Positions 50,572-64,000 of a stretch of 64,000 nucleotides of DNA are shown here, piece after piece. The notes below the pieces were generated by a model. It was given only the letters and a program-made list of their open reading frames with translations, was not told the DNA's origin and made no database searches. The DNA is from Perkinsela sp. CCAP 1560/9. Lineage: Eukaryota; Protista; Euglenozoa: Kinetoplastea. Both the position numbers and the translations under genes were made by a program. The DNA is taken from the NCBI GenBank assembly GCA_965644495.1, contig CBFFSA010000002.1, forward strand, positions 868,001-932,000. Direction: 5' to 3'. Each line of letters begins with the position of its first letter. The stretch's first letter is position 1.

Positions 50572-53500
50572 CTGTGTCCGCCGAGGGCGTTTGCCTTGCG
50601 AGGACAAGCTATGACGTAGATCAGAATCTGTGCGAGGATTGTTTTGTTTGGGAGTGCGTCCTGTGCATGGGTCCAAAAGCGCTGCGCCTGCTTTATCGTT
50701 TACGTCTTGCACGGAGGTAGTAAATCCTTGAGCTTCCAAGGGGTCCCAGTCGTCCATGTCGGCGGCGTGAGCGACAGATGAAACGTATGCTACCGTTGCG
50801 TGCAGTGTAGACGATCTGAGACCGAAGCCTCCGTGGCGCTTCCTGCGTAGTATTTGATCACGTGCGTGGAGGTTCAGGGGAAAAAGTGCCCACTCTACAG
50901 CCGTCATGACAGAGTCGTCTAGTAAAAAGCAAAGATGGGTAAGGGCCTGTGGGGGTGCAGTTAGGAGGGCGTATACCATCTGACAGAACTCCGTGCATTG
51001 ACGGATTAGAGCACTGGCCACTTGGGGGTCTCCTATTAAAACTATGGCGGCTAGGGTCTCACGTGCTGGGTCGATGGCGTGCTGCATCAGGAACTCCGCG
51101 CAGTGCTCGTCCGACCCGATCGGGCTCCCAAGGATACCGAAGGTCCCGTCATGCCGGATTTTCGCCTTTGGGATCTCGGGAAAAAGCGTTGTGAGATGAG
51201 CCGAGGAAGGTGGCGTTATGATTTCACTTTTCGCAGGATTCAAGAAAAGTCCGCACCGGGGGCCAACTTCCGAAAAAACGTCCAACGCCTTTCTGACCTC
51301 CACAGCCTCTCCCATAAGAACCCCATCGTCGATGTACCACAGTTGCGAGTCAAGGTTTGATCGGGATGCTATCTCTTCCGTCACCTCAGAAAGCACTAGA
51401 TAAAGATACAGTTTCTGTACCTTGTTGGTACATTTTTCTAGCCCTTCCTTTCTTTTCCCGGAAACGGGCATATTCTTAATTTTTAAATGCCCGTTTCCGG
51501 CTGACGGCTAGATGGAACTGTCCCTCTTTGTTGCGGAAGTAGGGGAAGCACTTCGCACTCTTCACCCCTCCCCGGCGCGCTCTCTTCGAGTGAGCTTTCT
51601 TCCCTCCCCGGCTCTCTACTTCTCGTGCTTTCTTCTCCCGGGATCTATGCGCCATGGTGGCCTCCTTTGAGGACCACTGGGCGTTCTACAGCGGGAGGAC
51701 ACGTTGTATGCGTGTATAGGGGATGCGAACTTGCACCCCTCTCTCCCTACATGCTGTAGCGAGTGCGGCGGTAACGGACCTCCCCATGATGCATCATGAT
51801 CCACGATAGACCATCTTACCGCCTGAACCCACGGCTTGACCGTGTTGCAGCATGAACCATGGCTATACGTGCTGTAGCATGACCGATGGGCGACTCGTCT
51901 CCTACCTCGCACTCCACTCTCTGTGTGACACCCGTCGTATGCGGGTCATGCGCTGATGGTATCGGCCGTCACACAGAGAGACGTATCTCTGCGCCACGAG
52001 CGTATGATCATAACCGAATAAAATTGGGCCTAAAGGATCACCTTGTTGCACGCCTTCGGCTGAAGGGATGAAATTGTTTCCATACGTGAGGCAAATCGGA
52101 CTTGAGTAGCACGATTCTACCCAGGTCGAAAGTTCCGGAAAATGTAGGCGCGTGAGAAGAGCGAAGACGGGTCTGCTGACGTTGTTAAAAGCGTTTCGCA
52201 GATCAACCTTGCAGAAAATCAGCTTGTCGCTCCCCATGTTGTTGAGCATAGTTTTCCGACAGAGATGAATCACTCGTTCGGCCCCCGCAGATGCGGCAAC
52301 ACCGTATTGGCGTCCACGGAATAACGTTCCCGCCTTCTCCTTTACGGCGAGGCATGCTGCCTTTCTTACTAGGCGCCTTAGGGTTTCGCCCGCCGCAATG
52401 GGCCGTACGTCGTCTTTGCCTTTCTCCAGAGCGCAAAGCCTAGCTCCTGCATAGAACTGCTGAACTTCAGGCGGCGCCTTTCCCTCGAGTAAGTGGTTCA
52501 CGAGGCGTGTGGGAGCTGAGAGAGGATTTACGTTTTTGTCCTCGTGTTCCAAAATAGCCGACTGGAGATGCTCAGGAAGGAGGCCCATTGTACCGGCGGA
52601 AGACCCCCTGTGAAAGCTTTGAACCGCATTCCTGACCTCTGCTTCTTGCCACTGTAGAGGGGCACCCTTAATCGGCGGTGGATCTTCCTCGAGGGGATTT
52701 TCGTGGGGCTCTGGTTGTTTTTCAAACAGCCTGGCAAGGGTCTCCTCGTTGTCCGGGGCCATGGTAGCTGCAGATATGGCGGCCATTCCTCTAGAGAATT
52801 CACCCTGACGCACCAAGAGCTCTGCTCTTATTGCCGCTCTATCTTCGTCACTTTATGGGTTCCTGGGCTTCGAGCGTTTTCTCTCGCCATCCTTCAGGGC
52901 TTGGTCCCAGAGGAGAAGGTAGTCTCCACCGAGCCAGAGCTCCATGCGTTTTTCCACATATGTGGAGTACGATGTGCGCCCTTTACGACCGCCACGGTAA
53001 GGGGCCGGGAGAACGCACTTCGGAAGCATCGCGAGGAGGGTCCAGGCCTGCACCGTGTTTTCTTTGACAGCGGATGTTAAAGCTTCACTCAAAATTCTGG
53101 CCCACAAGAATCTGCAGCAATTGGGGACGTCCTTACAGGTGCTTAAAGGAAGTGAACAAACTGAGATAAGAGGTGGAAGTGGATCAACTGGATGCTCTTC
53201 ATTTATTTTCTCCGAAAAAGACGTCGGCATGGGCGGGGTTAGTGATCGAACGGGTTGGTTTCGTCCTTTACAGTGCTTAAGGTGAGAGTTCTGTTTGATT
53301 TTGTCGTAATGTCGGATGCAATCCTTGCAAAGGAATCTACCTTCCTTTTCCCACCAATCAGTTGAAATATTTTTACCATTTCGGTGAGCTACATAATTGT
53401 AGAACGCTTGCCATTGCTCTCCGTGTGGGGGAGTCTTCCAGGTGCAACCTGCCGCTGGGCATTCACGTTGTATGGCGTATTGTGGAGTGGAATTCGGTGT

Positions 53501-58900: not shown

Positions 58901-59957
58901 CAAAAACACGGTTCGCATTTTGTATATATGTAGAGAAAAAAAAACGAGCAGGGTCATACTATTCTCAGAGAGAGCTATTCTCAGAGAGAGGGTGGGACAG
59001 GAGAGACACAGAGTGAGGATGTGTAGAAAAAGAAGGGCGTGGAAAGGTGGGCGGTAGAAATAAAGGAAAGAGAAAGAGAATCACTCCGGCCAGGGACACT
59101 GCTAGCATACTTTGAAAGCTTTGGTTGATGATTTAGGCTAGTAGTATTGGGGCTTAGCGCACCCCGCCGCCCGAGCTAAGACACTTCACTATAGTGGTAC
59201 AAGTAGGAAATTGAATCATTACTGTATTAGTAATGAAAAAGCCACTTTTGGAGGAAGACTGCCAGGAATTTGAAATTTTGTATGGTTTGACAATGTATGA
59301 AAAGTGAAGTTGGCGTTTACGAGGTTGAAGTGTGTTCAGGTACAGTAATCGAGCGGCATTTCGTGCTAGAGTAATTTCAAACACTTTTTTTATTCCTCTA
59401 GTATGCCGAAAAAGAGACATACCCACCTGTCGTCTCACGAGAGTCAAAAAATACGTTGCAATATTTGCGGATGCTTTAGTTTGCAAAGAAACATGAAGCG
59501 GCACATGCGGGAGAAGCATTGCAAAGATGGTGAGGAAATGTATGATGTTCAGAAAGTAGAAGGGTGCGTTAACGTTGCACTTTACATGTGCGATGTTTGC
59601 AATATTGAAGTAGTGAGAAAGAACGTTCAACGGCATGAGAAAGGGGAATCTCATCAAATTAGAGCCTTCTTAGCAACGTATAACAAATCCCATAGAAAGG
59701 TGCTTTTCTTACCTAGCAGGCGAGTGTTCAGATGCTCCTCCTGCAAATATAGAGGTGCTGCTTCACTGGAAAACGTGAAACTGCATGTTTCCACCCCTGA
59801 ACATAACGTAAAAATTGCCTCTTTGTCTCATGCACGCCAGAGTGAGTCAATTTACCAGAACACGCGTCCTTCCCAGGAATTTGCATTGACGGAAGAAAGC
59901 AATGCCATACAACAGAAGTGGAAACTAGCATCAATTGAAAAGGCAGAAGAATGGGCC

Positions 59958-61349
59958 AGGGGGGGCATTCGATGAAAATTCATCGAACGCACTGCTAGTT
60001 CGATGAATATTCATTGAACGGCGTCCCGTTCGATGACCAGGCGTCCCGTTCGATGAATATTCATCGAACGGGCAGTGCGTTCGATGAATCATTCATCCAA
60101 CGGGCACTTCTGCACGAATTTTTCGTCTCGATTTTTTTTGGGGAATTTGAACATTACCATCTCGTTTACATGTCTGGAGGCAAGGCCCAACTGTCAGCGA
60201 AGCCCAAGTGTGCAAGCAAGGCCCCCGTCTGCGAGCAAGGCCCAACTGTGAGCGTAGCCCGCTTCTGGAGGCAAAAGCCCCCCTTTGCGAGCAAGGCCCA
60301 ACTGTGAGCGTAGCCCTGGGACATAATTATATTTTTTGGCGACCCGCGCGCTCCATGCGGAGGTGGTGGATATTAGCACGGCGGGCGGATGAGTTGGCAT
60401 CACGGCCTTCTTTTTCCATCGGGCACGAGGGAGCGGCAAAATCTCAGGAGCTACTCCTGATTCTTTTGCTTTGGAGCGTGTGAACACTCCCATGAAAGGT
60501 AAAAAAAGTAAATAATCAACAAGGTACAGAAACTGTATCTTTATCGTTAAAGATTATTGTACGTGTGCTTCTCTCTAGATTCGTGGGAAGCAATTTGCGA
60601 AGCCCAACTACCTTGATAACAAATTTTAGTACCCATTTTGGCCGCGCGGGGGCCCCCGCGTGAGCGGGGGTGCGCGCGGCCGCGAAACGGCGAGGGCCCG
60701 CGTGAGCGGGCCTGAGCCGTACCCCGCGTAGGATTCCCCTGTGCGTCGTTAGTGGGAAGCAATTTGCGAAGCTCACTGAATTTCGTAGTTTTCGCTACGC
60801 AGGCGTTGTCAACGTATATAGTGAAGTGTAGGATACTGAACGCACGGAAAATGAAAATTAAAAACAATTCTTGGGTGTTCCACAAAAGTCCTTGACTTGC
60901 ACCGTAAATTTCCGTTCGTTGAGTACTCAACGAAAATCCGGCAGTTCGTTGAGTACAACGAACGTACCCCCAACCCAATATTTTTTGGGTCGCGCACTGA
61001 GGACCTGTGTCTGCCACTTCCGCAGGTTTGTGTATTTGTAAGTTATGATTTTATCTTTGTAAACTTATGAGGCAATAGTTTTAAGAATACTTCCGCTTTT
61101 TGATAACGTTTCGGATTTATTTTTGTCTTACGGATCAAGGTAGCAGCCAGGAGCGTGATGCAGACCGAAACGAGCTTTTTTTTTACAAAAAAAAATTGTT
61201 TTTTCATTCATCGAACAGGAAATCCTGTTCGATGAATGATTCATCGAACGAGTCGTACTGCAATCCATTCATCGAACAGGACATCCTGTTCGATGAATAT
61301 TCATCTAGCGGACAGTACGTTCGATGAATATTCATCGAGTGCCCCCCCT
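59958..61349. mobile_element. Non-autonomous TIR element inserted in the Helentron ORF
   Basis: TIRs AGGGGGGGCA(T/C)TCGATGAA(A/T)ATTCATCGAACG with palindromic TTCGATGAATATTCATCGAA subterminal repeats at both ends. Removing it rejoins EEW-(A)PEECPRS in frame. Confidence 0.85.
60517..60550 (-). other. Spliced-leader exon copy followed by a 23-nt U-rich UTR and an ATG ORF (60493-60194)
   Basis: Minus strand reads TTAACGATAAAGATACAGTTTCTGTACCTTGTTG-attatttactttttttacctttc-ATG. Confidence 0.8.
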
Positions 61350-61397: not shown

Positions 61398-61784
61398 AAT
61401 CCAATCCAAATCCAAATCATTCCGGATTGCTCCGGATGGTCACTGGCAAGCCAGACCCTTCACAGACAGATTTGGAAGTTCCGAGGCCGACGTCCTCTAC
61501 CAGTTTCCGCTTGCCCAAGGCGGCACCAACGTGATGTTGCCAACACGCTGCGTCGACGAACTGTACGTCAACACGGCTCACCCAAGAGGTGTAAGCCGTG
61601 TAAGGGAGCTAGTTCCCTGAGGGGAGGGTCCGGGACGGTCCTCCGAGTACTTTGGCCTAGTCGGTTCTCAGCCCAGCCTCTTAGAGTGAGGCCGCCGGGA
61701 ATATTGCGATGAGTGGGTTTGAACTCGCCGTCTGGGCACCATGTGCTTCAAACTTTGAGTTCTTGCCACTCCGCCACCTCCACT
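61398..61784 (-). mobile_element. tRNA-derived SINE (387 bp)
   Basis: 9-bp TSD CAGGGATCA (61389-61397, 61785-61793). Minus-strand head with A box TGGCGGAGTGG and B box GAGTTCAAACC; (GGATT/GGATTT)n tail. Removing it restores the Rep frame LQGS-PMFP. Confidence 0.85.
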
Positions 61785-64000
61785 CAGGGATCACCAATGT
61801 TTCCAAAGGATTGGAAGCAGGAATTGAAGCCTTGCACGTCTGAAGAAAAAGCTGAATGTTTTCATAATTTCCAAAGGAATACAGAGCTTAAAGCTACGTC
61901 GTGTGGCGTGTGTGGGGTTATTGAACCTTCCCATGAGATTTTGGAAGGAATCCCTGTAAAAGACTGTGACATGCTTCGCGCTATCATGGATGCAAACTTA
62001 AAAGGAAAACACACGTCTTCGATAGGTGGAAATCTGTATTGCATAGATTCGGAGGCGGTGTTTGGTACTGAGGTGCGCTCGTGTTCTCGTTGCAGGAAAA
62101 GCGTTAGACTAGGAGGCATCCCATACTTTTCGTTTAAGAACGACTTGGACTTTGGTCTGAATTTAAGAGATCTCCGTTTGCCAACATTGGGAGTTGTCGA
62201 ACGATCGGCCATATGCCGTATTCTGAATTTCCAGACGCTCTGTGAAATTCGTCATGGGCGGAATTTTGAGAAAAAATTTTGAAATCATGTTATTTCATTG
62301 TTTTCAACAGGACCTCAGGACATAGCTCAGATTCTTCCAGCTACTGAACAGAGGGTGTTTGTGACATTTGTCGGTGAACAAACAAAAAGGAAAGCTGAAA
62401 CAGATGCTTCCCTACAGGCATATTTCTCTGTTCGGGCTGACGCTACAAGAGCTTGGCTTTATTTTCTTAAAGAACACAATGTATTCTACTCAGATATTCA
62501 CATATCGGAACAGAGAATAGAGGATTTGGTGAACGAAAGCAAAAGAATACTTGAAGAAGCAACTGTTGTCAACAATGCCATTTCAGTGGCAGCTTCACTA
62601 TTAGCTCATAAACGAAACGCGATAGAAGAAGAAAAGTCGGAGGTAGAAAACGTTTTACTATGTGAACCTCCCCAACGAAATGCTGAGGATGAGATAGTCG
62701 AAAGCCTAACAAACCTCATAAAAGGTAATGACCAAAGAAGGCACCATGCCAGAATTCACGTTACAAGTGCAGCTAAAGAGTTTAACGAGAATGACAAAAT
62801 TTTGGGAACGGGGTTTCCAGATCTTTTTCCAGTTCTTTCTGAAGCGTCTGCCAATCTCCTAAAGCGCCCCCTTACTCCTGACAGCGGCCTGAAGCATTTG
62901 TTGTTGCAAAAAGACCCTCGTTGGTGCAGAAACGGAAATTTTGGTTTCTTACATTGGGATCAAATCAGGCGCCATTCCTGAGCTCGAAGTGTGAGGGTCA
63001 AGCCCAATATGTGGAAAAAAGCAAAGAAACTTTTGGAAAAAGAAAATATAATTGTGCAGTTGAAGGAGGCACAGAAGGACCCTCAACGAAAGGAAAATCG
63101 TAAGCTTCTGTTGGAAGCATGCAATGTCCTGCATATTGTAACTGGTGATGTTCCATTTTCCGACGCAGCTCGGAATGCGTGCTTTAAACAAATGGTGGCA
63201 ATTCATGGGTTCATGGGTCATCCGACACTCTACGCCACCGTATCCCCATGCGATCCAGATATGAAAATTACCCTGGAATACCTATGCGCCTCTTCAAAAA
63301 GCGTGCAAGAGGATTTTCTAATTGACGATGCGTACCAAAGAGTACAAAAAGTGCGAGATCACCCTGCATATGCAGCGCAAACATTTCATTTAATTATTGA
63401 TGCGTTACTTACCACGATATTTGGTGTAGTCCCGCACAAACGATTTAAAAAATCAGGCCAATCGGTCAGTGCTATTTCAGAAGAAATGCCCGTCGGAATT
63501 TTCAAGATTATGAAGGGAATGTTTGGGGTGGTTGAGACACAAGGTAGAGGAAATTTGCATATGCATATTGTTATATGGGGCATCCCTCTCGCTGAGTATG
63601 CTTCCGAAAAGATTCATATGGAATCAGAAAGAAACAGTATAAGCCAATTAGTTTCTGATTGGATGACGGTTTCCGTGCCGTGGGATAAAGGAGATACGAG
63701 AAGCGCCGGGGGAAGAGTGGGGTTAGAGCCATGCCCGCCATTCGATAATCAGAAAGCCATGGATATCAGAGAGCATCGAGTTGCATCAACTGTGCAACAG
63801 CATGTGCATACGGAGAAATGTTTCAAAAATATAGGTGTAGCGCCAACAAAATGCCGATATGCATACCCACGCCAGGTTACGCCATTGAATGCTTTTTATT
63901 TGTTAGAACAATCAAGTTCTACACCAGGAAAAGTAGTGGCAAAAACAGTTTCAGAAAATATGGCGGCCCGTGCTGAAAGTACAGAGCCCTCTTTCTTTGG

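Follow-up and report, generated by a model that had tools for sequence, protein, structure and literature searches.

Why should what looks like the 5' end of a mature mRNA, with an SL exon, a short leader and a start codon, lie inside a DNA element flanked by TIRs? This question is raised by a locus in a 64,000-nt stretch of the genome of the kinetoplastid Perkinsela sp. CCAP 1560/9 (contig CBFFSA010000002.1, positions 868,001 to 932,000), hereafter called the window, in which positions are given with the prefix w. Two answers had been offered in an original prediction made from the letters of the window: either a processed retrocopy was captured by the element, or a mobile element has the SL hard-wired ahead of its own ORF and thereby bypasses trans-splicing. 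The analysis described here makes it likely that the cassette is the 5' fragment of a LINE captured by a non-autonomous Merlin element, where it is most likely an inert passenger.

The SL copy and the SL RNA genes

Read on the minus strand, the sequence ...ACAATAAT is followed by a 36-mer (w60517-60552), a 23-nt U-rich stretch (w60494-60516) and an ATG at w60493, which opens an ORF extending to w60194. The 36-mer matches nt 3-38 of the 38-nt SL RNA gene exon without a mismatch, so that the SL-like 34-mer originally described was real but slightly short; the AAT found just 5' of it is flank sequence and lies outside the SL. The U-rich spacer, the ORF and the missing donor site had been read correctly, and the bases directly after the exon copy are ATT instead of GT.

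The motif is also, as had been supposed, the SL of this very species. Two tandem SL RNA units, 297 bp apart, are found at C1:661.3 kb (locus L061, G000:C1:661312-661660), each made of a 38-nt exon (AA followed by the 36-mer), then GTATGAGAAGC... and a short structured intron that begins GTATGAG, which is the layout of kinetoplastid SL RNA genes; Rfam returned no family match in the window or at these genes. The 21-Mb assembly contains 508 occurrences of the 13-mer core of the SL and one of the reversed control, and the 36-mer has 232 exact occurrences against none for its control, so the SL match is beyond chance. The exon-intron junction is present at only eight loci in the assembly, and the promoter-proximal context of SL genes only at the two tandem units, both of which are uninterrupted. 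Promoter-bearing SL RNA genes therefore number only two, versus 232 exact 36-nt copies and 508 cores; either the assembly underrepresents the SL array, or SL genes are very scarce in this organism, as has been reported for Perkinsela.

Other SL-derived sequences are dispersed in the genome. A family of about 70 copies in two subtypes, with members at window positions 51399-51560 and in L059-L078, has a head that starts at about SL nt 8-12; from there its sequence crosses the end of the exon, goes on into GTACATTTT... and contains a hairpin (CCCGGAAACGGGCAT...ATGCCCGTTTCCGG). Its appearance is that of a SINE-type retroposon whose head derives from the SL, and it differs from the intron of the true SL gene (GTATGAG...). 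In addition, one copy of the cassette itself (L038:1475-1930, G000:C8:687975-688430) carries an insertion of about 450 bp within its SL, after CTTTA, and SL copies in DNA may thus be insertion targets themselves.

With so many SL RNA-derived pieces in the genome, including 80 sites at which the SL is followed by GTA, the cassette could be imagined to be a decayed SL RNA gene that has kept its exon and lost its donor and intron. However, it bears no similarity to the SL intron, the exon being followed by ATT and then by the leader and ORF of a LINE (see below), and the promoter-proximal sequence restricted to the two tandem genes is missing. Alignment of the 250 nt upstream of the cassette with the upstream region of the SL RNA genes gave a local score of 7, versus a shuffle mean of 8.4. 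The two regions are unrelated, and the promoter that the original prediction had proposed to look for by such an alignment is ruled out, as far as an SL-gene promoter is concerned, by this lack of similarity and by the confinement of the SL-gene context to the two tandem genes. The same two observations refute the decayed-gene reading, which is almost certainly wrong.

An ORF made of a LINE 5' end and host-element repeats

The ORF behind the SL (w60194-60493, minus strand) encodes 99 amino acids. A six-frame search of the genome with its first 60 residues gave 148 matches: besides about 30 copies of the cassette, they include open frames of 1,350-1,620 aa, whose N-termini are similar to the first 31-46 residues of the query (mostly 37-38), and ten loci with long LINE ORFs were retrieved from these matches. 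RVT_1 was detected at E ~1e-21 in all four ORFs tested (1,355-1,623 aa), and comparison of the LINE reverse transcriptase (RT) with PDB entries gave weak matches to the RT of LINE-1 ORF2. When six LINE C-termini were aligned (alignment A1), invariant CPGC...H..GC and SGPD...YD.T..HE...RK columns appeared after the RT, which at the motif level is the CCHC and PD-(D/E)xK arrangement of restriction-like endonuclease LINEs; in the ORFs tested, Pfam found neither an APE domain nor Exo_endo_phos. Judged by these motifs, the source LINEs are non-LTR retrotransposons of the R2/CRE/NeSL structural type. In a homology search, the LINE protein found no match other than unnamed proteins from metagenomes or assemblies.

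The LINE copy in L035 is 92% identical to the cassette DNA from the leader to codon ~47, beyond which the cassette DNA is unrelated to it and has no LINE match. The ATG and the following ~46 codons (MGVFTRSKAKESGVAPEILPLP..KKK.., w60356-60493, minus strand) hence derive from a LINE, and the 23-nt stretch at w60494-60516 corresponds to its 5' UTR, the LINE copies having U-rich leaders of 21-46 nt between SL and ATG. The C-terminal half of the ORF lies in repeat families D2/D6, also found in siblings of the host element that lack the cassette, and the 43/55-nt tandem repeats (w60163-60316) are assigned to the host element for the same reason. Since LINE codons are fused to these repeats, the ORF is a chimera, its second half being read-through of host-element sequence. 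By homology, the cassette appears to correspond to the 5'-terminal ~197 nt of a non-LTR retrotransposon, made up of SL nt 3-38, the 23-nt leader and ~46 codons.

The last base of the SL exon is joined to the 5' UTR with neither donor nor intron, which is the junction of an SL-tagged retrocopy, while the cassette stops at codon ~47 and has no poly(A) tail or TSD of its own around it. An A8 run at w60133-60140 is present in both cassette-less siblings, L051 and L053, and is therefore host-element sequence; it was considered, and rejected, as the LINE tail of a RIME-like derivative. An internally deleted, RIME-like LINE with both ends was likewise ruled out, because q1000-1250 matches none of the ten LINE loci, each compared with 0.9-1.5 kb 3' of its ORF included.

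The classical reading of such an SL-tagged layout, for which dinoflagellates provide a precedent (PMC12014239), is a retrocopy of an ordinary host mRNA, here captured by a transposon. This is highly improbable, as the relatives of the ORF are all N-termini of RT-encoding ORFs, and the search for an SL-less, AG-preceded parent gene, which had been proposed as a check, produced no such parent but only 5'-truncated or SL-bearing copies of LINEs. The retrocopy half of the original prediction accordingly survives in modified form: a spliced, reverse-transcribed RNA travelling as a passenger in a DNA transposon still fits the locus, the RNA being that of a LINE and not a host mRNA.

SL remnants at the 5' ends of LINEs

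The SL copy in the window and the SL found on full-length LINE copies share the same starting point within the SL (CTTTAACG). Among 52 LINE 5' ends tabulated, nine carry the 36-nt SL, two a suffix of 32-33 nt, six one of 12-23 nt and five one of 8-9 nt; suffixes of 7 nt (11/52) and 6 nt (10/52) follow, and the remaining nine ends have fewer than 6 nt or none. The suffix sits immediately 5' of a U-rich leader of 21-46 nt (once 90 nt), whose sequence varies by LINE subfamily, the junction being constant at the last base of the SL exon. The flanks 5' of the SL are mutually unrelated. Together with the A-runs of 14-28 at LINE 3' ends, this graded series provides the A-rich 3' end and variable 5' truncation of the R2/CRE/NeSL group, and an exact exon-end junction combined with graded 5' truncation is what is expected from target-primed reverse transcription of an SL-carrying RNA.

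How the LINE RNA would have obtained its SL is suggested by the exact exon-end junction, which points to trans-splicing. No LINE lies behind an SL-gene promoter context in the assembly, which favours trans-splicing over co-transcription from an SL gene; the latter was rejected on this ground, with the reservation that the assembly may not contain the SL arrays in full. No LINE was identified that could be an unspliced master copy with an acceptor site.

Copies whose SL is reduced to its last 6-7 nt (CTTGTTG or TTGTTG) account for 21 of the 52 (L079-L118), have unrelated flanks and are far more numerous than intermediate lengths. This class could stem from a preferred RNA 5' end, from joining at microhomology or from a non-canonical acceptor. 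At the other extreme, the retrocopies of SL-carrying RNAs in L041, L043, L088, L090, L091, L099, L112, L118, L072 and at window 60552 all start at SL nt 3 (CTTTAACG); that of L072 is a retrocopy of unspliced SL RNA and, like the others, lacks the first two A's, as expected if reverse transcription halts at hypermodified cap-proximal nucleotides.

A more speculative view is that the SL in DNA is a working 5' module of the LINEs, its remnant and the U-rich leader serving as an internal start or as a non-canonical (TG) trans-splice acceptor. We regard this as improbable. If true, SL-headed LINE copies would be re-expressed, a TG acceptor regenerating the same SL-leader junction; the excess of 6-7-nt ends would mark a preferred RNA 5' end; and the cassette-bearing Merlin elements would scatter start or acceptor modules through the genome.

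A second SL-headed LINE family was also seen, in which the SL head abuts the poly(A) of another LINE (L040:1090-1420, L044:5800-6100, L046:1170-1440, L009:780-910). Its ORFs start MKSDQS... or MSGISPH... and contain a WDQF..YTTPIP motif and Zn-finger-like CxxC/H motifs. End-to-end template jumping could account for these pairs, as could insertion targeted to SL copies in DNA.

The host element

The cassette is carried, on the minus strand, by an element of 1,399 bp (w59954-61352), slightly longer than the span of 59958-61349 first assigned to it, whose TIRs had rightly been described as intact. The TIR arms are 62 nt long and 85% complementary, both termini begin with GG (GGGAGGGGGGGCAC... and GGCCAGGGGGGGCAT...), and an 8-bp TSD, CATTCTTC on the minus strand, flanks the element on the left (w61353-61360) and on the right (w59946-59953). 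Conserved terminal 5'-GG on the TIRs and a TSD of 8 or 9 bp are the hallmarks of Merlin, and on its GG termini, long TIRs and 8-bp TSDs the host can be classified as Merlin-type. It is non-autonomous, its sole long ORF being the chimeric one. The 5' terminus is shared by a sibling, L055, in which a 552-aa ORF matching DDE_Tnp_IS1595 (PF12762, E 1.2e-11, L055:597-2797) lies ~450 bp further in; a second terminus of L055 was looked for over 5 kb and not found. Genome-wide, DDE_Tnp_IS1595 has 109 matches, many of them in open frames of 300-580 aa.

At least ten near-full copies of the host element exist at 95-97% identity, and of eight full copies, seven are flanked by a distinct 8-bp TSD of their own, which indicates recent cut-and-paste movement. 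Three partial cassette-bearing elements stand in tandem with a spacing of 3,761 bp at G000:C16:200692-209192 (L012-L014), an array that represents segmental or tandem amplification of a truncated copy. In the window, the Merlin element interrupts an ORF that matches a C2H2 zinc finger weakly, below threshold, and that resumes beyond the element (window 59403-59975 and 61713-62981). The downstream ORF carries DUF6570, a domain usually placed at the N-terminus of Helitron proteins. As the Merlin element lies inside this zinc-finger-like ORF, the neighbouring Helitron-like element is its insertion site and not its partner.

A block of ~630 bp and its possible origin

The cassette is kept in all copies of the host element that were examined, so it is not unique to the copy in the window, as the plain-retrocopy version of the original prediction would have had it. 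The 217 nt that follow the SL recur at ≥94% identity at no fewer than 30 loci. By contrast with these copies, the siblings L051 and L053 have the same termini as the host and lack an internal block of ~630 bp (w60353-60986, minus strand). At its start, this block has a motif resembling the terminus of another Merlin subfamily; it stops within the LINE-derived ORF and has GCGCG microhomology at both ends. It also lies within elements with other termini (L024 and L020 types), and hence in at least three TIR subfamilies, a distribution that could reflect retention or merely exchange between related elements.

The part of the block 5' of the LINE junction (w60553-60986, minus strand) includes the region to which promoter activity had been attributed. 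The repeat and GC-rich feature noticed there (60550-60800) is confirmed as a 27-nt direct repeat (w60580-60606 and w60749-60775) with a GC-rich stretch between its copies. At four other loci, C1:665813, C8:164020, C8:169471 and C19:144058, recognized by a 28-nt pattern match, the flank ...ACAATAAT runs on into TGCACGAT in place of the SL; since it continues differently there, SL nt 3 marks the junction precisely, just as it does in full-length LINEs.

From these observations a sequence of events can be proposed. LINE RNAs, of a family with reverse transcriptase and restriction-like endonuclease, would acquire the SL by trans-splicing and then be copied into DNA; being copied from RNAs that already bear the SL, genomic copies would begin with the SL exon. 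One such SL-headed LINE would have inserted into, or next to, Merlin-like sequence, an order of insertion that is suggested by the pattern match at the four 'empty-site' loci. A piece of ~630 bp, comprising flank and LINE 5' end, would then have been taken up, as DNA, by a non-autonomous Merlin-type TIR element, through nested insertion and deletion or through gap-repair template switching at the GCGCG microhomology. Continuation of the LINE frame into the host repeats would have created the 99-aa chimeric ORF, and a transposase acting in trans may have spread the composite element to at least 30 places.

A simpler course would be that a full SL-headed LINE inserted directly into this Merlin element and was later deleted past codon ~47, with no capture of a composite block. 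The 5' junction at SL nt 3 is like that of ordinary insertions, and other repeats do receive LINEs in this genome, as in L040, where the LINE lies inside an RT ORF. Yet what the siblings lack is ~630 bp long and includes ~430 nt 5' of the SL with a terminus-like motif of another subfamily, so that the insertion relative to the siblings is larger than its LINE part; moreover, neither a LINE 3' end nor a TSD follows downstream, q1000-1250 matching none of the ten LINE loci. Direct insertion is therefore unlikely, and capture of a composite block is the preferred account.

Does the cassette function?

The second half of the original prediction was that the DNA-encoded SL and the region upstream of it start a 99-aa protein without trans-splicing. 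In its favour, the mature-mRNA-like layout is found in all of the ≥30 copies, nearly all of these keep the ORF open, and the block occurs in several TIR subfamilies. ORF intactness weighs little either way, however, because the copies are 95-100% identical, and variable sites are evenly sparse across the element interior, a uniformly low variation which means that the cassette is under no special constraint and shows no extra conservation. Against a TIR element that hard-wires the SL before an ORF of its own, the ORF is a LINE-repeat chimera, the upstream sequence resembles nothing upstream of SL genes and stands at four loci without any SL, and siblings transpose without the block, the termini of L051 being intact and its flanking ATAAATAT resembling an 8-bp duplication of its own. 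A DNA-encoded SL would also be without the cap structure (kinetoplastid cap4) that gives the SL its function. A functional hard-wired SL is thus very unlikely, and the captured LINE fragment is probably inert.

Relation to known systems

DNA-encoded SL relics that arose by retroposition are well known in dinoflagellates (PMC12014239, PMC5585692). The locus shares with these retrogenes an SL exon in DNA whose end is joined to a 5' UTR with no donor site. Unlike them, it lies in a kinetoplastid-type genome, the tagged RNA is that of a retrotransposon itself, and the window copy is a 5' fragment without poly(A), with no tandem relic SLs.

CRE, SLACS and CZAR are SL-gene-specific LINEs of trypanosomatids that interrupt the SL exon at a fixed site (PMC12278014). 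The LINEs described here resemble them and NeSL-1 in having a single long ORF with a central RT, a C-terminal CCHC and PD-(D/E)xK-like motif, and an association with the SL. They differ from the CRE clade proper (SLACS/CZAR/CRE1/2) in that no fixed insertion in an SL RNA gene exon is found: SL exon nt 3-38 heads the LINEs, flanks are diverse and the SL genes are uninterrupted. Short derivatives such as RIME (of ingi) and NARTc (of L1Tc) retain the LINE ends and the Pr77 internal promoter (PMC1874656); here too, a short 5' piece of a kinetoplastid LINE persists without RT, but no LINE 3' end is attached to it, a DNA transposase would mobilise it, and its 5' end is the SL and not Pr77.

Merlin elements are defined by GG termini, long TIRs, an 8-bp TSD and a DDE_Tnp_IS1595 transposase (PMC8101967). 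The host shares the first three with Merlin and its non-autonomous derivatives, and an ORF matching the transposase domain is present in a sibling with the same 5' terminus; by carrying foreign (LINE) DNA, the window copy also resembles Pack-MULE-type elements. In kinetoplastids (Bodo saltans, Perkinsela), the Merlin copies on record were without TIRs or TSDs and judged inactive (PMC8101967), in contrast to the present family, with its TIRs, TSDs and young copies.

The published Perkinsela genome paper describes more than 500 SL-like pieces and a single intact SL gene (PMC5601477), and its Supplementary Notes 1.2-1.3 list 24 retrotransposon-SL neighbourhoods as well as an L1Tc-like cDNA with SL; the elements are there called ingi/L1Tc-like, and the retrotransposon-SL link is left open as 'worthy of further investigation'. 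The genome analysed here agrees with what is given there in being that of a kinetoplastid with a 38-nt mini-exon, more than 500 SL-like pieces, few intact SL genes and retrotransposons beside SL pieces. It is not from that strain, as the SL primer given in the paper (PMC5601477) differs from the SL of this genome. No paper on kinetoplastid LINEs with SL-headed genomic copies was found in the literature, nor one that contains a 16-mer of the SL of this genome.

Implications

For the locus itself the result is mostly deflationary: most probably a dead LINE head riding on a DNA transposon, and not a gene that bypasses trans-splicing. Its context is worth more than this ordinary passenger fragment. 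The SL appears as the inherited 5' end of a transposon family, which has left hundreds of SL copies in DNA versus two promoter-bearing SL genes, and in such genomes SL-primed cDNAs or the mapping of SL reads can fall on DNA-encoded SLs, a warning for annotation. Further, a Merlin family that has TIRs and TSDs and has evidently been mobile in recent times is present in a group whose DNA transposons have been reported only as TIR-less relics (PMC8101967, PMC12278014). Finally, the hundreds of SL fragments described near retrotransposons in the Perkinsela genome paper (PMC5601477) may find a concrete explanation in SL-headed LINEs.
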